DNA of 64,000 bases from Hyphochytrium catenoides (GCA_900088475.1 FLMG01001584.1:1-64000); one strand, 5' to 3'. Counted from the stretch's first letter, positions 1 to 30,845 are shown. Program-made: numbers and translations. Notes: a model not told the origin generated them from the sequence alone.

Positions 1-40
1 TCTCTCTCTCTCTCTCTCTCGTTGCTCTCCCTCTCTCTCC
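1..40. repeat. (CT)n microsatellite
   Basis: tctctctc... run with short interruptions at the window start. Confidence 0.9.
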
Positions 41-323
41 TTTTTAGACTCCCTCCCGCTCCGCCATCATGGGCTCGGAGATCTCGCTCCAGCTCAATGG
101 CTTTCGGCTGATACCCTAATGATCCATCCCTTTACCTAACATTGTCAGCCTCACTAGCTTGGCTTCACCTACCTCAAGAGCTCCGTCTTTATACTTCGTC
201 TATTGTCTGTCTGGTAGGTGGTTGGTGCTTAGCGGCTCGGAAGTGAGCAGCAACTGTTGAGGGGAGCCTTTCTCTGTTATACTTAGTTCTTCCGGGAAAC
301 AAAAGGCACAGAGCCAAACAAAT

Positions 324-3300
324 ATGCAGAACGAAAGCACACAGCACCGCGTCAGCGACGCTCTTAAAGATCGATATCCCTACCGCTCTCCTCCATTTAC
401 GTCAGAGGTCGACCCACAACAGGTAACTACGGCCTTCGGTGCGAGAGCTGTTCCAAAGCTGGCAGGAGCGCTGCTTCAGGAGGATCTTGATGAGCAAAAA
501 AAGATTCAGGCTCTGAAGGAGCTAAACGAGATGTTAAGCAATCAGGTTTGATGAGGATGGCTGCTGGTGTAGCGGTCGGGTCGTGACCGTCCTCCTCTTC
601 ATCTATGATTGCACATCTTCTTAGAGCTATAATGGGCATCCTGTGTGCCCTCCTTAATGCGCTGGTTTCGTAGTACTCAGCCTGACTGCCTGGTACACTG
701 TATCGCTCCATTTTCCAGGCAATGCTGGGCTGATGCCACACGTCCTACTGCAGATTCTCTCCTGAAGTTTGCAATCATCATCTCTTCTTCTTGTTCTCAG
801 AAGCTTGCTTAACGACAACTTTAATCTTGTTCTCCGTGTAGGAGAATAAAGCGCGAGTGATCAGTAACAACCTCATCCCAATTGGCTGTTCGCTGCTTGC
901 TGCAAGCTCCGAAGAAGTCCAATACCAGGCCGCTCTTCTCCTAGCAGGAATAGCTACCGATAGCCAGGTAAACGGCTTTCCTCTCTTAGGATAAGATAAA
1001 GACCTTCTTCTGAGCTTACTGCGTGCCTAGGGACGGAAAGGCTTGAAGGAAGTAGGCGGGTTCGAGGACCTCGTGGATCTTCTGCAGCACACTTCCTCGG
1101 TCAGTTGCATTCCGCCTCTTTCCATCCTAGAGGTTGCCCTGGCGCGTCCTCCCTGTAACCATCTCAGCTCTATCTTCTCCGCACACCGATAATCCGCTCT
1201 GAAGCAATGGTACCCATTATCGAGATCTCTTGCTGATTGTCCTTCAGTTAATCTTCATCTCCCATATATCATCTTTCGCCCGTCGCCCAGCCTTCCATCC
1301 CAAAGCCGCATTCCGCCTCTATTGAACTTCTCATCCAAGAGCTTCATGTCCACATCAACCTGTCTAAAGAAATGCTCATGTAGATGCGACATCGTGTGGC
1401 TGCCACCAAAGTTCTTATGGTAACATCAGAGTTTAGAGATGGCATTAAACTATTGTTAGCGGAGGAGAAGATTCTCAGAGACTGCGTGGCTGCATTGGAG
1501 GGTCTCCTTGCCTCACTCTCGCCAAATGGCGGCTCACTGTCTCGACCTTCTTCTCCTCTCGTCCAGTCTCTTCTCTTACATCTTATGACCTTCCTCTTCA
1601 ACATTGCAAAAGATGAGAAGGGTGTGGAGAGGATGATCGATGGCGGAGTTGTATCGATGAGCCTTTCCCTGCTAAAGCTGTTTCGAGAGCTGGAGCCATT
1701 GATCATTGAAAGAACACTTGGACTGGAATGGAAACTAGGCCACCTGGTACCGGCTTGAAGTTTCTGTTGCACAAGATCCTGCCCTTCTTTGTTTGGTCTC
1801 TTTACCCTACCCCAGGGTTCTTCCCTAGAACTGGCCCCTTATCTGCCAAACTATGAACTGAGGGACTCTAGGCTATTTGCTAATCGCTCTCTTCTTGTTC
1901 TGACATAGCTCTTTTGATAGCCCTTGCTCATTCAACTCTCAGCCGCAGGGTAAGTCGAGTCTCATCGAGAATGGAGGCGTAAGGTTAACCGCTGAAGTGC
2001 TCCAAGGAGTAATGGAAGGCGAGGTGCATGCGGATCAGCAGCTGCTGAGAAATATCAAGAGAGAATGTGCGACATGTTGTTAGGCGGGGCTTCAGAAGTA
2101 TATCTTAACTCTTCCCATTTTACTCGGCCGCCTTCCTTGTCCCTTCCCCAGCTAAGGCTCTTCTGAGGCGCCACTTGATGCTGTGTTAGGCCCTTTCTCC
2201 CGCCCCGTGACTTTCAGACTTGCTCTTCTTCTCCCAATAGCTTTCGTCATCATTGACATTGCTATCGGTGTGATAGGCACTGGCGCTCTTATGCTCCTTG
2301 GGACCTCAGAGGAAGGAAAAGTCGAGGTCTATAAGTACGCCGAGGAGCTTCTGGTTGCTCTTGTACAAGAGGAGACAGAAGATCAGAAAGCTGTTAGGAC
2401 CAATGCCGTTGCAGCCATTAGGAATGCCATTGAGGCGCCAGAGGTGAAGTCAATGCCTCTTTCTAACTATCATATGTAGACTTTCGCCGAACCTGTGCAT
2501 GACTCTTTACATCAACCGAGTACCTTTTTTTTTTCTGTCTCTTATCATTAGGTTACCCTTAAAGTGACCCTTTCTCTAACTCAAGGTCGTGAGCACGCTC
2601 GAGTGGTACCTCTGTCTTGATATCTTATTATACATCTCAGTTGCCTTGTCTTGCGTGGATTGACTTGCGGATCTTCTAAGTGACAATATTGCTTTTCCAA
2701 GTGATACTATTGCTCTTCTAACTGATACTACTTCTTGACTTTTTTCCCTTAGGGTCTACGCCGGTTCACGGAATCACTACTATTCAAACCCAAAACTTTG
2801 GTTGATGTGATTGGTCTTCGAGCCTGCCGGCCCCTGTTAGACCTCTCTCTTCCTGACAAATCAACCACAAGTCCGTCAACTTCCTCTTCTGGCATTCGTC
2901 TGCAAGCTCTCCATCTAATTCTTGAGCTGTCAAGTATGAAGGACGGCCCTGCGACGGTGATGAGCTGCCCAGGAGCGGTTGACACCCTCTCGACATCCTA
3001 CCTAGAAAGCAAAGAAGAAGAAACGGCTTTAAGAGATTCCGCCTACAATGTGCTGCTAGTGCTGGCGAAGGTGAGATCATGAAAGAGTAACTCGATCTGC
3101 CGTTATCACTTACGCAGACGTCGACCTGATCCTTCTTCACCGGCCAACGGCCCCATCTACATCCACTCTTCGCCTACATGACCCCCCACTGTCGCCTTTT
3201 AATCTTGAAAGCTCCTCCTTGTGCTGCCACTATTGGGGCTATCCTCCGCAAGTATCTCTTTTCCTCTAACGCGCCCCTTCCTTTAAGTTCCCCACCTACC

Positions 3301-21773: not shown

Positions 21774-22404
21774 TTACCCTGCGAAGCTGATCCCGTTTCT
21801 ATTCTGTTCATAGAGTCCAGCCTGCAGCATCACTTGGGAGGTGAAGTCAGCGAAGCGCGGGTCAAGCAGCGCCCGCTCTAGTCCTTTCGCTCTATCCGGA
21901 GCGGAGTCCACCTAATAGAGTCTCATGTCAGACCATATAGTCCATATATCTTACGACGAGAGATATGAAGCGCACATGGGAAAGAACTGCTATACATGAA
22001 GCAGAGTGCAATTGAAGACCAGGTGATTGAACTGGAAGCGAAGGAGGAAAAGAGAAGAAAACTGATGCAAAGACCTCTATGAGAAGCCGCTGTAGGACAG
22101 GATCGCGAAGTGCCGCTCTCAAACCCTCAGATTGAGCCACCCTCTGTTTATGTTCTTCCGTAATCTTCCAACTCTGCTCTTCTTCGTCTTCTTCTTCACC
22201 AACTGGAGCAGTCCGTTGCTCCTCTATTTTATCCTCCTCTTTGGGGGCACTTTTGCAGGTCCCATCTTCTGCTTTCTTATGCTTTTGGAAGCAGGGCACA
22301 GAACAATATCGGACTCTGCATTTAGGGCATTTATACTTCGGCACAGCTGCCAGGCAGATCGCGCAAAGACCACTGCCTTTGCCTGTCAGAGTTTGGTCTG
22401 CCAT
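21774..22404 (-). CDS. ZNHIT3: zf-HIT protein, ZNHIT3/Hit1-like (box C/D snoRNP assembly); 2 exons
   Basis: CAICLAAVPKYKCPKCRVRYCSVPCFQKHK; C-terminal SEGLRAALRDPVLQRLLIE|VDSAPD..LLDPRFADF typical of the Hit1 C-domain. Confidence 0.85.
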
Positions 22405-23561
22405 ACCCCTAGCGGTTGCTACCACATCGAGAGGCTGGATGAGGCTTAAAGTCTGGGCCGATATGAAGAGAGGGAGCGAAAGAGTGACTGCACCCTCACA
22501 GTAGGGCACCGAACCTTTGAGACCTGAAGTCAATCTTCTAGCTTCTGACGAACAGGGACGCTAGGACGAGAACCTCCCTATTGGTGTGCGACTTACGCAG
22601 CCTTACCATGTGGAGACGTGACAGCTGACAAGACGAAAGCGTGGCCTGCACTCGTGACCAAGCAGAGATGATGAAAGGAAAGAAGAAAGAATTAGAAGAG
22701 TTAGATCTCAACGATCCCATGCCGACGAGCGGATGGACGTAATCTGAGAAGAGCTGGTGAAGCTGCGCAGCTCTGGGAAGGAACTCTGGAAAACAAGAGA
22801 ATCAGAATCCGCGAGTGAAACGGCAAGTTGGTTGGCTGTCAGCTGAAGTTTTGTGAAGGTTTCATCTCGGTAGGATTGTTTCACTCCAACATAACTCGTA
22901 AGTGACTTATCATAACAGTACGTGAATTTCTTTCCCTGGTCCAATTATTCCGTGAAACCTTGGAAGGAGAAGAGAGATGTAGTAGAGTGTCGCTTGGGAA
23001 AAATTTTTGTACGAACTGCTCAAGGAAATGTCAACGCTGGTCGCCGTTGTTTCTCTTTTGCAGCGCCAGACGCGGGCAGGGGAATAGCCGATGAGGCCGC
23101 CGTGTCTTTCTCCATGTCATTCATTGGAAGAGTACTAGCAAAGGAATCTTTAGTTCTATAGTTTGCCTGTCAGCGAGCCATCAGTACCTCGTGGTGGGTG
23201 GTAGGGCTAAGACACATGAACACTGTCAGAGAGGAGAAGTGGGACGAGAAGGGCAACGTGCAGGATCCATCTTTAGCTGATGATGACTCTGTGCACCTTT
23301 ATATGTATGTTGAAGTCGTCTTATTATTAGGTCATAAATAGTGGATAAAGCAAGAGCTCTTTTCCTGGTCACGATAAGCGGGAACCCCTATGTCAGACGC
23401 AAGAGTTCCCCTAGTCATTAACCATTTCCCACACGCTTCCGACCCTCGACTCCAGTAAAAGCCAGGATCGTCGTGGTGCATATACTTCCCAAACAGCTAG
23501 CGGGCAAAGCACTTTCCCCATGCGTGCTTTGGTCTCCCTAACACTCAAAATCGCGGTTGTC

Positions 23562-26500
23562 TCACCTATGCGTTTCCTTGTAAGCCTCATAGGAAGTAGT
23601 AATGGCCGAGAAGAGAGCCTGAGAAAGCTGCAGCTCCTCCACCTCGGCACCCGACAACTTATCAGGGTGTAGATTTCTGACAGCTTTCATGAACGCACGC
23701 CGAATGTCTGAGGGAGAAGGAGACGCAGGAAGTTCTAGTGGCTCCATAGCGCGGGGATAAACCTAAGGAAAGAGAATATAACCGCGTTAGAAAAGGATGT
23801 GGAGTACTAGGTACTTGAAAAGCATCGTATGAGAAAGGCACAGGCGTCACAGTCTTTGCTCCCAGAACAACCCATAATCCCTAACAAACCCGATGCCGTA
23901 GCAAGGGACAGATACAAAGGATGCCGTAGCAAGGGACAGATACAAAGGAACGGAAGAGGTGACCGACAAGAAATCACCGTGGGGAGAAGAGGAGAAGCGG
24001 CAATACTGAAACATAGTCAGCAGACCTGATGTAGCGTGAGCAACATCTGCTGCAAGTCTTTGCCTTTGACCCATTGGTAAACAAATTTGTTCGCTGCTGC
24101 GGCCGCTGCCTCTGCTCTATTAGCTGCTTCCTTGGATCTCTGCTCCTCCGCCTCTCTTTGCTTAAGGCGATCCTACGCCAACATGCAACTTACTGAACAA
24201 GGAGCGTAGATACTCCCTTGTGGATGCAGCGATTCATATGACAAGAGTTTGGGGCTGAGGTTCAGAATTTCAACGGCAAGCGGAGGTAGAAACCATTGAT
24301 AGTTGAAATTACGAGGAAGAGAGAGTGAGAACTATAGAACAGTTACCTGCTGCCTTTTCTGAGTCTCTCTCTGCTGGGCCAGGATCCTCTCTTCAATCTT
24401 CTCCAATATGGCCTCTGCAGGCTTCTCCCATCGGGTGACGCGAGTGAGCTTATGGTAGTAATACTTCTCTCCATTCTCAGTAGTGACCTAGTAATGGACG
24501 CAGATACCACGTTCGTAGGCATTATATGGTAAGCTTATGAGATAAGCGCTAATTAGAGACGACATAGAGGCCCACAAGAGGATAAGTAATAGCAATTTGG
24601 AGCAAAAGGACTCACCGATGGCAGATCTACTTTTGTGAAGCAGAATAGTGCCCAACAGTTAGCAAAATAGCATACAAGAACAAGAGCAAGGTAGTGGATC
24701 CTTCAGACGAACGGGAGACGACGAACAACATACAAAGCGGCGTACAAGAAGCCTGAATGGCGTAGCCTACAGGGAGGCGCCCTACCTCTATCCACCCTCC
24801 TCTGATCTCTGGCCCTCCTTGTCCCCCGTCAGGGGCCCTAACAGGCGAAAGCTTTGTGTCCCCCTTCTCATCTCCCTCCTGTCCGCCACGTAATGGCTCT
24901 GCGTCTCCCATCGAACGTCCATCCCTGTTCGAAGTTGCCTTCGGCTCACCTGGCCAAGAGGTCTGGCCAGACGAAGGGGGAATTGAAGACTCGGAAGCAG
25001 AGTATGCAGGAGCAGAGGAATGACTAGACACTGTCTCTTCCTCATTGCCTTGTGTTGGGGGAGAGGCCATGTTCACGTTCGCTCTAGAACGGACAAACTC
25101 AAAACGGCTTCCTTTGCCCTTCTGCCGACCTAGAGCTTGCTTTCTCTGGAGTACTTCCTTCTTCCCAAGCCGATCTAGTTCCGCGTACTCCTGCTCAGCA
25201 ATCGTTAGGAAGCAATCTCAGCGGACAAAGGAATCGAGATAGACGAGAAATTTTATATATCGAGATAAGGCGGAAATAAAGAAGAATAGAAGAGGTAATA
25301 AAGTGGTCCAATATTAGAAAGGAAGAGCAAGAGGGAAGAATAGACATATACGCTAATAGGAGCCCTCAGCAACATCAGTCTTACCTCCAGCATCTTGAGA
25401 TATTCAAGGTCGATGGAAGGAGCAGCACCTTTTCCCTTGTCTCTGGCCTCTTTCTCGAGCCTTTCTACCTCCCGCTGTCGCTGAGCCTCATTGTAGGCAT
25501 TCATTTGTTCAAAACGATTTCTGGCGGGTGCCACTGTCGTCTCCCTTCCCTTGTGTTTCGTTCCCTTATCATCCTTCTCCGCTCCTACAGGCACCTTTCC
25601 GATAAGCCCACCACCCGAATCTCCGCCTGTGTCCAGCACAGGGGATGACTTAGTTCTCCTGCCTATGCCGGGGCTAGTGCTTGAGTAGAGCTTGGCTTCA
25701 AGCTCCTTGCCGTGCCGGCTGGCGTTAAGCTTGATAGTGTCTTCCTCTTCTCTTGGCAACGCCTTCCTTTCTTGGACACCGACATCCCCAACACCAGGTA
25801 TAGTAGGCGCCGCACCAAACAGGAAGTCGAAGTCACCTTCTAATCCTCTTCTGTCCCTGAAAAGCATAGAGTCAGATGGAGAGCCTTCCGGCTGTACTTC
25901 AATTTCATCTGGCTTTGCTTTTCCCTCAAGCGCCAGGCCCTTGCGAGAAGCTGGCCTCTTCTTCTTCTGTTTTTCTTTCTCATCCTCGGCAGAGGGCTTC
26001 TCGGAGGATGAAGCAGAGACACGATTAGGTCCTGGAGAGTGAGACCGTGACTCTTTAACGGTTCGAGGAGGATCAGGAGGGGGCGTGGGAGTGAGACCTA
26101 AAGTTTTCCTCTCCCCTTCAGTCTTTCTGCTTACTTCTTTGATGGAAGCAAGTGTATCCTTCGGTACTCTGCCGCTGTCAGGACCAAATAGGGATGGCAC
26201 GGGATCTTCACTATCACTATGTATCTTGTCTCCTTCGTCTGGATTTTCTTCGTCATCAGTTGATTGGAAGAACTCTGAGGTCCGCCTTGGGGTCCCTTCA
26301 CGAGGGCGAAGACTCCTTCCTGGGGATCGGACCGAGGCAGCCTGGAAACTTCTACTCTTCTCCCTTCCTTTAAAGGATGATGCTAAGCTGGAGCCAGACG
26401 ATACATTTGCTTCTTCTGTTTCTCTTGACTTTCTCCTTTTTCTGGCAAATGAGAAGATCTTCTTCCACTTGCTCTGGTCAGGGACTTGTCGTTCGTGAGG

Positions 26501-29500
26501 AATAGTTGGGCGAGAGAGATTGGAATGAACCAAGTCTCCTCCGTCGCTCTCCTTTCCCGTCCATACTTCCCTTTCAATCCCAGGGGAAGCCGGCTGGAGG
26601 GATTCAGCATCTTCACCATCACTGAACGAATACCAAGATGAAGAGCGCCTCAGTCGACAGACAGAGATGATTGCTACGATAAGTTAAAGACGGAGTATTG
26701 GCCGCAACAGGATTTTGATGACTCTGCAACAGGAAATCAACTACTTACCTAAGCGGTGGCAAGTGGTAGTGGGAAGTAGAAAAGAAAGTCCTACTTTCTT
26801 CTACCGTTCTCTCTTCAAGCTGTTGGTTAAGCTCCTCCCACACCCTTCGGCGGCGCCTACTCAGCGTCACCTGGGCCTTAGCCAGGACTAATGCGGTAGA
26901 CTGTTAATAGGTAAGAGAAGAGGGAAAGTGAGGGTAATAATAATATAAGAACGATCAAGGGCGGTATACACGAGGCGCAACGCGACCCTAATGGAACTAT
27001 TGCGAATGAAGAGATGACCGCTTGGACTACTAAGACAAGGATTGCTAGCTTGCACTGATATTCGAGTTATTACGCACTGATTTGCCCGTAACGCCAGGTA
27101 TTGCGATGGGTCTTTCTTTCTGTCTCAACATCCGGGCCTCAAAGCACCAACATCGTTCCGTGATAACTCCACGGTACCTTAAGCTGCCGATGTCGGAGAG
27201 AGGATGTTATCTCCCAGTCCTTGAGTAGCTTCTCCAACCCACTGGTTCTCAAGCTAGCGTCAGTCTTCGTTATACGCCCGCTGGCAGGGAGTGCAGATGG
27301 CACCACCTAGACAGCCGTAGTCATCAAACCAAAGTAAAAGACAGTGTCAACAGCAAGCAGTGCGAGGACGGCTCATAGGGTACGAAGTGGAACATGATGT
27401 GGGTATATGAAATATAGAAAGTCTTGGCACGTACATGGTGGACTTGGAAGAGGAGAGTGTCTGCGACAATAGCTTCCAGCGACTAGGCAGTCCAAGGCGT
27501 AACGGTATACGAGAGAGACGCCGGGCCCCCACAAAGGTGGAGGCAGGCACGGAATAGGATAAAGAAGAAAGGGACAGACCAGATGGTTAGTGACAAAATG
27601 GAGGCAGAGGAGCCATGGCCCATCCGGGACACAACACCCCAAAGCAACAATAAAGAAATGGTCCACAAATAACATGGCGAGGATTGTTTAATTTAGAGAG
27701 AATCCTTTGCTGGAGGGAGCTCCTCGCCTATAGCTTCCTCTTTCTCTTACCTTGGATGAATGCTCAAGTAGAGAGCTTTGTTTGATGGCGCTGCCCGCAA
27801 AGAGGGAGGAGATGGCAGCAGAGGATGAGAGGTTCTTTTTCCTCTCGTAGCGGGAATATAGCTTAAGCTGCTGCTGGAAACGGACAAACTCCGAAGATTG
27901 GTCCCGAAGGGCTTTGGCCTGCGAGTAGGTGATCGACGCCAGATAATCAGGGCACAGGACACTCGCTTCAACAAGAATTGGAGACCCTTTATAATACAGA
28001 ATCCATGTTTCTTCACCCGCTCGCCTTACTATCGTGAATCGTGGCTTTGCCAAAGTTTGGATCATTTACCAGCAGGCTTGTCTTCTTAGCAGTGCCAAGT
28101 AGAGTCTTCTCAATCAGTGGTAACTCCTCCTTGACGAGCAGCCGTAGAGCGTCTTCCCCTCTCTTGATGGCGAGAGTTGCTCTTGCATGCGTCAGGGTGA
28201 AAGGAAGTTGCTCTTCACTCTCTCTGAGATTATTGAACGAGTGAGAGGATGAAAGCACTGCTCTGCCTTCTTCGGCCTCCGGTGATGATAAGGGTAGAAG
28301 CCATGGGCTATTACTCTGCGTGTCACCTTGTAGGCTTGGATTTACCTACCGTTGTAGCAGTATACGCATGCGTTTTGAGAGAAAACCAAAGTTACGGTAG
28401 ACGATGCTGTTTCCAAGCCCTCTTCTCCCTCATTTATAATAACCTCACTGATCGGGCAGAGCTCCTACACTCTTATTTGTGTTTGTACTATGGTCCCCTG
28501 TGTCTTTCACCCTTATGACCATCATCACCATCACCCTTCTTTCCCATTGCGTTGTATTCTACAGGTTGCAACTTGCCTGCTTTATGACAAATTCGTTGTA
28601 GGGCATGGTCAGAAAAGCTTTAAGATCCTTGGAAGCAATGAAGTTACTGTGCGAGCAGAGAAACTGAAGCCACATCTGCAAGATGCCGCAGCGACTTGGA
28701 GGAGAGGGGGAATGAAGAGAATCCCCTCCTGCTGAGGAAGAGGGTGTCCCTCCTCCACCTCCTCCTCCCTTCTTGACGGAGCGAGAGCCTTCCTATCAAA
28801 AAGAGGAATTGAAAGTACAGGAGTCAATAACGATTACGTAATGCTACTCAGTCTATGACGCGGTCCTTGGATGTGCGGAGGTGCGCAAGACTTACATGTT
28901 TCGGAAGCGTAGGGACACAAGCCTGAGGAAAGGTTGCTACCAGTCTGGCATACAACCATCTGTCGAGGAAGAGGCAAGTTTACCGGTGAAAAGGCAGGAT
29001 TACGAGTCAAGGCAAGATAACGGGTGAAAAGCTAATGAGGATAAGTCAGCGATACCACGCTCCTTACATTCAACTAACCTACCCAAACTGCTATCAAGAC
29101 AGGAGGTAAAGGGAGTAGATTTCCTACCTGAAGTCATTGTAACGTCTTTCCACCACAGCAAGTGGGTCACGAGCCAGCGTGCCCGCCGCTTTCTCGAACG
29201 TTGAGATAGAAAATAGAGGAGCAGAGGTAGACGAAGATGAAGAGAGAGGGAGAGAACCCGATGACTTCGAAGATGAATGCAGAACCTCAGTAACCTGAAT
29301 ATGGCAGTAAAGTTCCCACATAAAGACACTGCGTTGCCTGGAAGCGGCAGAGGAGGCAGAATTCGTCTCCTCGGCGCCTAGTAAAGGTTTATCGGCCGAA
29401 AGATAAGAAGGAAGACTTCAGTGGGCGGTAGTGAAGCTTCAAAAGCCTAGACGCGTAATTTTCCTTGCAGTGACTCATCGCCCCTCTTCTGCCTGTGACT

Positions 29501-30845
29501 TAACGTACGACGTTTCCCTGGGTCCTGTCTCCGCCGACGACCTATTAAATATTCTCTCGCTACTTTCCATACGTATTTCCTTCCTTGTCTTCCTTCAGCT
29601 AACCCCTATACATACCTTTCAAGAGATCGGAGTCTGGTGTTAACGAGGAGGTTTCGCCATCTGCGCCCAAATCGTACGAGCTGGAGGCCTCTTTTCCCTC
29701 AACCGAGCGGTTGTCAAGCAATTGGTCCTTTGTGAAGTTCTCGTCTCTACAGAGCTCTTCTTCTATTTCCTCTTCTTTGCTTGCTTTTTCTCTCAAAGAT
29801 TCCACTTCTTCCTCCGGCTGCAGCCTATCTATACTCCTTGTACTCAGTGAGAGCTCTGGCACCGGATGGGCGGGGCTAGCAGTCGCTTCAGCATCATCAA
29901 AGGGTTTGCTTAGCCCTAGAACTCAGTAGATGGTAAGTCGACTCAAGCCACATTTGGTACTTTAACTAGAAGTGTGAAAGATAAGTTACGTCCATCAAAG
30001 CCGGAATGGTGATGCCATAAGGGACGAGAGTTAGGAGGTTGCAAGCACCGGCACTGTCCTGACGAGCGGGGTATGATCTACTACCCAGAACCTCTGCTTT
30101 GCAAAGGGGACAAGGAAAGCTTGATGCAGAAGACGAGGGATCCCGAGTCTCCTTTACTGACAGTGAGTCAGCATATTTCCTCAGTGCAACCTTTAGCTTT
30201 GACACCACTTCCTCCACTGTGAAGCTGCGCTGTCCTACCCGGCGAAATAGCACAAGGGCCACGGAGGGTCTTAGCGAAAGGTCGGTAATGACTCAAGAGA
30301 GAGAGGATACATCTCCACGAAGCGAAGGGGGCGGTATTTTCACCTACAGAGACCTCTTGGGAAACAAGTAGCAGAACTCCTACCGTCTGAGTTTTTGCTG
30401 AACTCCTTCCTTAAAGCGCCATATATCCGATCCATTAAGAGACGTATTTGAGGCATGGAGAACTGCAATCCGGAAACAGACTGCTGTGGTGGGTTGGAGA
30501 CATGATTGGGAAGCGCGCCGACTATATCGTTTTTCTGGCTCATGGCTAGAAGCTTGTCCGTAAGCATTGCAATCTCCTTTTGGTACTCTGATTTGGCTTC
30601 AAGCCGCCCCAGCTGCCGGCCCTCTTCATATGCAACCTGTCGAGCCTGGATGTTCTCCAGTCTGAGCATTGAAAAAGGAGAAGAAAGGCTGTCTTAGATG
30701 TCTGGACATCAAGCCCATCAGCTTTGTTCAACAGATTGTATACAGAGTCGTTCTCTAACTCGGCGTTATATTAAGACGAAGGGATAGCCAAGGGACAATG
30801 GTCTTGCCCTATCTGGTACCTCATCTGTTCCAAAAGCGCTTCCAT
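23562..30845 (-). CDS. Multi-domain endosomal-type protein: coiled coil - PX - BAR-like - disordered linker - WW - auxilin-type J domain (single-gene model)
   Basis: Spliced PX: VVERRYNDFR|WLYARLVATFPQACVPTLPKH|..RCGILQMWLQFLCSHSNFIASKDLKAFL. BAR-like end: RHRQLK|STALVLAKAQVTLSRRRRRVWEELNQQLE. Intron 26748-26622 joins in frame to the 426-aa ORF, which has no ATG at its 5' end. WW: GWIE|VTTENGEKYYYHKLTRVTRWEKP. J: QWVKGKDLQQMLLTLHQ|VY..IRRAFMKAVRNLHPDKL. The 5' start (MEALLEQMR, 30845) is uncertain. Confidence 0.7.
23892..23947. repeat. Perfect 28-bp intronic tandem duplication
   Basis: gatgccgtagcaagggacagatacaaag x2. Confidence 0.95.

Follow-up and report, generated by a model that had tools for sequence, protein, structure and literature searches.

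A Hyphochytrium catenoides sorting nexin predicted to join PX-BAR, WW and auxilin-type J domains in one polypeptide, with relatives in oomycetes and other protists

We analyzed a 64,000-nucleotide stretch of Hyphochytrium catenoides DNA (GCA_900088475.1, FLMG01001584.1:1-64000; hereafter the window) and describe a gene on its minus strand, extending from 30669 (or 30845) to 23562, in a eukaryotic, intron-rich genome of ~49% GC. Overall, the gene is best explained as encoding one protein of ~1,381 residues that probably brings Hsp70 to endosomal membranes rich in phosphatidylinositol 3-phosphate (PI3P), a reading to which we assign a probability of roughly 0.6. Our confidence is high for one polypeptide, for the PX-BAR fold and for the J-domain type, all of which are shown by the analyses reported here; membrane binding, Hsp70 recruitment and the identity of the Hsp70 client are proposals that we hold at even odds. 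The original prediction for this DNA, made from the sequence, had read a PX domain, a BAR-like helical region, a WW domain and an auxilin-like J domain as apparently one polypeptide and had not recognized the architecture as described. We likewise found no description of the PX-BAR, WW and J layout in the literature searched; public entries exist, under the name “PX domain-containing protein”.

Relatives were collected by searching 1.84 billion representative proteins exhaustively with the 66-residue J exon as query; 28 hits were returned. The closest J-domain relatives (P0015, P0021 and P0007) contain PX, WW and DnaJ domains in that order. P0015 is a protein of Aphanomyces euteiches, and orthologues are found in A. 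stellatus, A. astaci, A. invadans, A. cochlioides, Achlya hypogyna and Saprolegnia diclina, the saprolegnian database entries being labelled only “hypothetical” or “PX domain-containing protein”. By BLASTP, the window model matched P0015 over the PX-BAR part (25% identity, E 2e-14) and, collinear with this match, over the WW-J part (42% identity, E 2e-37). A profile search with the family alignment (A1) in a word-indexed protein library gave no further members, and look-alike searches of the atlas returned generic J and PX/SNX clusters and nothing more specific.

The run from PX to J is encoded in a single uninterrupted open reading frame (ORF) in three unrelated metagenomic eukaryotes. On contig L002 (5929-7791), a 620-codon stop-free ORF proceeds from the RRY motif through a helical region and a linker to the WW and J domains, with Pfam scores of 54.8 bits for PX and 37.3 bits for WW. 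Contig L005 (158-2899) holds the entire 913-residue P0021 in a single ORF and is present in two runs. A metagenome scan using the WW-J alignment of the family as query yielded L008, on which an ORF at 1-3084 combines the PX-BAR part (E 6e-13) with the WW-J part (E 4e-60), and L016, on which PX-BAR exons lie ~2 kb upstream of WW-J on one strand with introns between. In L016 and in a further metagenome contig, L021, the WW-J part is divided into three exons, resembling the window gene; the closest named relatives, those of saprolegnian oomycetes, have intron-poor genes, whereas the window gene has 15 introns. The layout is shared by saprolegnian oomycetes and metagenomic eukaryotes, and the single-polypeptide claim is supported by the domain order of the relatives, by the single ORFs of L002, L005 and L008, and by the hidden Markov model (HMM) alignment across the splice described below.

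In the window, the PX-BAR and WW-J parts meet at a predicted splice between exons 11 and 12 (intron 11, Table 1) that leads in frame into a long exon lacking a start codon, as had been proposed. Two candidate acceptors (26648 and 26621) lie 27 nucleotides apart and both preserve the frame of the long exon, which is open for 476 codons and reaches its first ATG only at codon 273. When the ATG-less 272-codon part was shuffled 20,000 times, no shuffle was stop-free, and no ATG was found between the exon 11 donor and its acceptors when the sequence was read directly. Because these 272 codons contain neither ATG nor stop and no ATG precedes the acceptors, the WW-J unit must take its start from an exon further upstream, a role that the last helical exon fits. 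The family HMM aligned to residues 16-128 of the spliced window protein and then to residues 318-816 as a single alignment, which crosses the exon 11/12 junction (residue 670) unbroken. Approximately 35 residues past the junction, inside the ATG-less stretch (26533-26480), the protein carries DLVHSNLSRPTIPHE, which matches the motif (F/V)HPTLxRP(L/T)(K/I)P that relatives place directly after BAR (HPTLxRPLKP in oomycetes).

The spliced window protein was analyzed locally against family HMMs, and evidence on its fold was taken from the homologue P0015. The PX pieces quoted in the original prediction were all located (RRYNDFR ending at 29128, WLYARLVATFPQACVPTLPKH at 28959-28896, and LQMWLQFLCSH..KAFL within 28792-28577). 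The window PX domain is split over three exons, two of which match complementary segments of the Pfam PX model, weakly; relatives score above the Pfam cut-off of 21.6 (P0015 54.5 bits, and the L002 ORF as given above), and the family PX-BAR HMM scored 96 bits on the spliced window protein. In the PX alignment, RRY and the PTLPK Lys are present, as is an Arg that precedes the LQMW Trp by seven residues; the loop between them carries a Gly/Ser-rich insert in the window protein, whose PX appears to keep the usual residues for PI3P contact. A profile of the PX-plus-helical part of the family was matched against solved structures, giving Arabidopsis SNX1 (E 3.9e-25), Chaetomium Vps5 (E 5.8e-21) and mammalian SNX1, and the SNX1 and Vps5 alignments extend beyond PX into BAR helix 1. 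An AlphaFold2 model of P0015 residues 165-500, computed with the family alignment, had a mean predicted local distance difference test score (pLDDT) of 81; in it, a PX fold leads into three long helices. Foldseek on the P0015 model ranked SNX1 in ESCPE-1 first (E 2.5e-8), then Arabidopsis SNX1, SNX9, SNX33, Mvp1 and Vps5. Using VIA-align, the model aligned to the SNX1 PX-BAR with a Z-score of 20.6 over 276 residues, and its helical part alone gave Z-scores of 15.1 against the SNX5 BAR and 14.3 against arfaptin. A three-helix BAR of the SNX1/Vps5 type is supported, by way of the P0015 model, for the helical region of the window that had been called BAR-like, because the HMM alignment is collinear with the P0015 family.

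The last exon reads KAVRNLHPDKL, giving the J domain its HPD and a basic helix II, and the H, P, D and K are invariant across 11 relatives. The family HMM scored 188 bits over the WW-J part of the window, and solved auxilin J domains were among the structure matches of the window J exon. A profile of 11 family J regions matched plant JAC1 (3ag7) at E 3.4e-13 and five bovine auxilin entries at E 1e-8 to 1.6e-6, the six best solved matches all being of the auxilin type. These auxilin-type matches (3ag7, 1xi5, 1nz6, 1n4c and 2qwo) span positions 8-103, including the extra N-terminal helix, and ordinary DnaJ-type domains were aligned over the core alone, from position 48-57 on, at E ≥ 4e-5. The W..K..LL..L pattern of the extra helix is present in the window protein (VYQWVKGKDLQQMLLTLHQ). 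These comparisons support assignment of the window J domain to the auxilin type, with its HPD intact, as originally read. JAC1 itself is known for chloroplast movement, not uncoating.

An N-terminal region (QAR.LGR.EGRAE..) is common to exon 1 of the window gene and residues 1-95 of the relatives; it matches no Pfam family, and residues 20-90 of P0015 were modelled as a long helix (pLDDT 76-82). The linker between BAR and WW is ~540 residues long and disordered, and it conserves a proline motif of the HPTL type, an acidic-flanked LFG motif in one or two copies and a basic helix, W..(Y/I)..RRK. Exon 12 of the window carries DLVHSNLSRPTIPHE, W..IF..RKRRK and two LFG motifs, and the HPTL-type motif is doubled in P0007 (residues 284-335). 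Acidic-flanked LF motifs recall the retromer-binding repeats of FAM21. The WW domain, noticed in the original prediction as W..YYYH..TRWEKP, is split over exons 13 and 14 (GGWIE/VTTENGEKYYYHKLTRVTRWEKP) and reads GWIEV..YYYH..TRWEKP, with the two Trp, aromatic core and final Pro of the WW signature. Its second half alone scored 31.4 bits with the Pfam WW model (E 1.9e-7; cut-off 26.9), the nearest solved WW domains were those of Prp40, FBP11, TCERG1 and WBP4, and a coiled coil lies between WW and the J domain. Because WW domains of the Prp40/FBP11 kind bind proline-rich peptides, the HPTLxRPxxP linker motif could serve as a WW ligand within the same protein; the full-length AlphaFold2 model of P0015 confirmed the domain order and gave no sign of linker docking.

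With SNX1, SNX2 and Vps5, which are associated with retromer and ESCPE-1, the window protein shares a PX domain followed by a three-helix BAR and seems to share the RRY, PxLPxK and Arg residues for PI3P contact, but it adds an N-terminal helix, a long linker, WW and J, which are in no described SNX-BAR, and the BAR helices of the family are somewhat shorter than those of SNX1 (~170 residues in P0015). With auxilin, GAK, Swa2 and JAC1 it shares a C-terminal J domain with HPD, the extra helix bearing W..K..LL..L and a disordered region before J. In contrast to auxilin, GAK and Swa2, it lacks PTEN-like, kinase and TPR domains, and neither it nor its relatives have conserved clathrin-binding motifs; its membrane targeting, unlike that of auxilin, would be via the PX-BAR unit. 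A third comparison is with RME-8 (DNAJC13), an SNX-1 binder for which a joint action with Hsc70 in uncoating ESCRT-0, and SNX-1 too, has been proposed (PMC9642905). By analogy, both systems would bring a J domain to PI3P endosomes beside an SNX1-type coat. There is no sequence relationship, RME-8 being a very large protein with PH-like domains, IWN repeats and a central J domain of another subtype, and neither a PH-like N-terminus nor IWN repeats were found in general Pfam scans or in the full-length P0015 model; the two are alike in function only. In the window protein, nexin and J domain are covalently joined, whereas in C. elegans and mammals they are paired in trans.

We propose that the PX-BAR unit would bind to, and probably dimerize on, curved PI3P-rich endosomal membrane, that the flexible linker would let the J domain sweep its surroundings, and that the J domain would recruit Hsp70 and trigger its ATPase on whatever is bound nearby. 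The outcome would be the dismantling of protein assemblies on that membrane, for which the candidate Hsp70 clients are the lattice of the SNX-BAR, ESCRT-0 or clathrin patches, and WW-bound partners. More tentatively, and with the odds in our view against it, the protein might be a self-contained endosomal coat carrying its own uncoater, combining tubule-coat assembly and ATP-driven disassembly in one molecule. If this were true, a self-uncoating coat would replace or pre-date the separate animal RME-8 in pseudofungi (oomycetes and hyphochytrids) and related protists, and the HPTLxRPxxP motif, bound to the WW domain of the same protein, may gate the J domain.

Several results weigh against one protein that brings Hsp70 to endosomal membranes. 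The window's own protein gave no self hit among the 28 from the 1.84 billion proteins, and a word-index protein search with the long exon found no match between 262 and 833 residues. The Pfam Vps5/BAR models matched neither the window exons nor the relatives at E ≤ 0.01, the Pfam DnaJ score lies below the cut-off of 27.8 in every member (17.8-23.9 bits; window 23.9), and the evidence on the fold comes from P0015, which is ~25% identical to the window over PX-BAR. The window protein and eight relatives were scanned for the clathrin box, repeated DLL/DLF, DPF/W, FxDxF, NPF and W-box, none of which was conserved before J, and the clathrin stripping suggested in the original prediction found no support there. 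All of the splices are predicted from sequence and comparison. Moreover, an in-frame TAA (26747-26745) lies within the GTAAGT donor of intron 11; unspliced RNA would therefore yield PX-BAR alone, ending after BAR, and such a stand-alone product is possible.

The alternative that survives best is that the protein is a true auxilin, in which the linker would bind clathrin and the J domain, together with Hsp70, would remove it from endosomal buds or flat endosomal clathrin patches. The auxilin type of the J domain, including the extra helix, and the long disordered region preceding it, as in auxilin, would fit, but the closest solved J domain is that of JAC1, known for its part in chloroplast movement and not for uncoating. 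A published link of RME-8 to endosomal clathrin (PMC9642905) also speaks for this alternative. Given that the linker of the window protein and its relatives holds no conserved clathrin-binding motif, we regard a true auxilin as unlikely. Alternatively, the locus might make two products, a fusion when intron 11 is spliced and a plain PX-BAR nexin when it is retained, and in this way switch its Hsp70 recruiter. The in-frame TAA directly after the exon 11 donor and the two in-frame acceptors would suit such a switch, although it is a reading taken from the sequence alone and intron-poor L002, L005 and L008 lack such a stop and encode the fused form only; we consider it decidedly doubtful. Finally, it is highly improbable that a PX-BAR nexin ends at the TAA and a separate, adjacent WW-J gene lies downstream, the join being accidental, for although the stop codon sits exactly at the exon 11 donor, the splice model is of the predicted kind noted above and mis-fused gene models occur (P0034 of A. 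astaci, with a TauD-type enzyme), the long exon has its 272 stop-free codons without ATG, no ATG lies between donor and acceptors, the ATG-less part bears the motif that relatives place right after BAR, and PX to J is uninterrupted in the single ORFs of three unrelated organisms.

In P0034 (1046 aa) the family is joined to GBBH-like/TauD domains. This is probably a mis-fused gene model, because in Saprolegnia (contig L001) a TauD-type gene sits close by, two genes downstream of the family locus.

A protein that brings Hsp70 to PI3P-rich endosomes would join in one molecule two functions that are on separate proteins in animals. As an SNX1-type PX-BAR fused in nature to a J domain and kept in several protist lineages, the family would give independent evolutionary support for cooperation between SNX-BAR coats and Hsp70, and a one-protein system would be a simpler setting for asking what Hsp70 dismantles on endosomes. 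RME-8 is missing from fungi and alveolates and is patchy elsewhere (PMC9642905), and because of this patchy distribution the family may reveal how RME-8 function is provided in some lineages. Among its members are proteins of plant and fish pathogens (Aphanomyces, Saprolegnia), whose endosomal sorting has received little attention.

The 16-exon splice model (Table 1) forms a single open frame of 1,381 codons, and its 15 introns are GT-AG throughout except for one GC-AG. Exon assembly was guided by alignment A1, with two junctions chosen by family HMM score, and the final model scored 281 bits with the family HMM (E 1e-87). The features quoted in the original gene model all lie on the minus strand, as given; a micro-exon (27482-27435) and the GC-AG intron were added to that model. 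Family N-termini begin 6-9 residues ahead of QAR, and the ATG at 30669 has the same spacing; since this ATG already fits the family N-termini, the exon at 30845-30820, from which the earlier model started, is possible but not needed. No homology support was obtained for exon 3. Exon 5 is 63% identical to P0015 (tblastn), and the last PX exon is followed by the GC-AG intron, with a perfect CAG/GCAAGT donor at 28575-28576. Only when exon 7 was joined to 27918 did a gapless 43-residue family alignment result, from LP to an invariant (F/Y)E. A 43-nucleotide intron (28029-27987) was tried in this region and rejected (253.3 bits vs 259.8 bits for the gapless 28070/27918 join). The model with the micro-exon was the top of 621 enumerated splice models, at 104.2 bits compared with 84.0 bits without it (+20). 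A fragment-wise HMM search of the locus recovered the PX, WW and J exons and no others, and codon-usage scoring of the locus gave a signal too weak for exon definition.

Table 1. Predicted exons of the window gene and the junction intron, in order of transcription (slashes mark splice sites)
Feature	Position	Strand	Supporting features
Optional 5' exon, MEALLEQM..	30820..30845	-	AG/GTACCA donor; joins 30661 in frame
Exon 1, conserved N-terminal helical region ..QAR..GRQLGRLEAKSE..	30384..30669	-	ATG 30669-30667; donor G/GTAGGA
Exon 2, end of N-terminal conserved region ..FTVEEVVSKLKVALRKYAD..	30085..30234	-	Phase-compatible with exons 1 and 3; HMM-covered; donor tentative
Exon 3, acidic disordered spacer	29616..29915	-	Open frame, compatible splice phases
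Exon 4, PX strands ending ..VVERRYNDF(R)	29128..29377	-	Family HMM alignment from residue 318
Exon 5, PX WLYARLVATFPQACVPTLPKH	28896..28959	-	Pfam PX positions 20-43, E 0.052 (exon alone)
Exon 6, Gly/Ser-rich PX insert, then PX helix ..RCGILQMWLQFLCSH..KAFL..	28577..28792	-	Pfam PX positions 53-82
Exon 7, PX-BAR connector and start of BAR helix 1 ..VKEELPLIEKTL..	28070..28315	-	Family alignment
Exon 8, remainder of BAR helix 1 and start of helix 2	27751..27918	-	HMM score
Exon 9, 48-nt micro-exon SLEAIVADTLLFQVHH	27435..27482	-	Sites ctag/ and /GTACGT
Exon 10, BAR helix 3 ..EKLLKDWEITSSLRHRQLK	27178..27306	-	Family segment ..EWDEL..; sites tag/GTG and AAG/GTACCG
Exon 11, BAR end ..AKAQV..RRRRRVWEELNQQLE..HLPPL	26749..26900	-	Family H..W segment; strong donor AG/GTAAGT
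Intron 11	26622..26748	-	Donor AG/GTAAGT at 26749/26748; two bases carried into next exon
Exon 12, disordered linker	25385..26621	-	Within 476-codon open frame 26683-25256
Exon 13, linker and first WW strand ..GGWIE	24786..25193	-	Tandem acceptor 25193/25190
Exon 14, rest of WW and coiled-coil start	24347..24487	-	Pfam WW; 68% identity to P0007
Exon 15, coiled coil and auxilin-specific extra helix ..VYQWVKGKDLQQMLLTLHQ	24026..24172	-	W..K..LL..L segment alignment
Exon 16, J-domain core	23562..23762	-	HPD 23669-23661; TGA 23564-23562

The downstream neighbour, on the minus strand at 21928-22533, encodes a HIT-type zinc finger (Pfam zf-HIT, E 1.8e-10). The sequencing runs matching the long exon were DNA-like, and four of them together yielded a single 179-nucleotide contig and no splice joints. 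That contig, present in a run carrying another organism's label (X4, 2024), covers part of the exon (25789-25967) with one mismatch, and two soil metagenomes contain 7-8% of the sampled words of the long exon.

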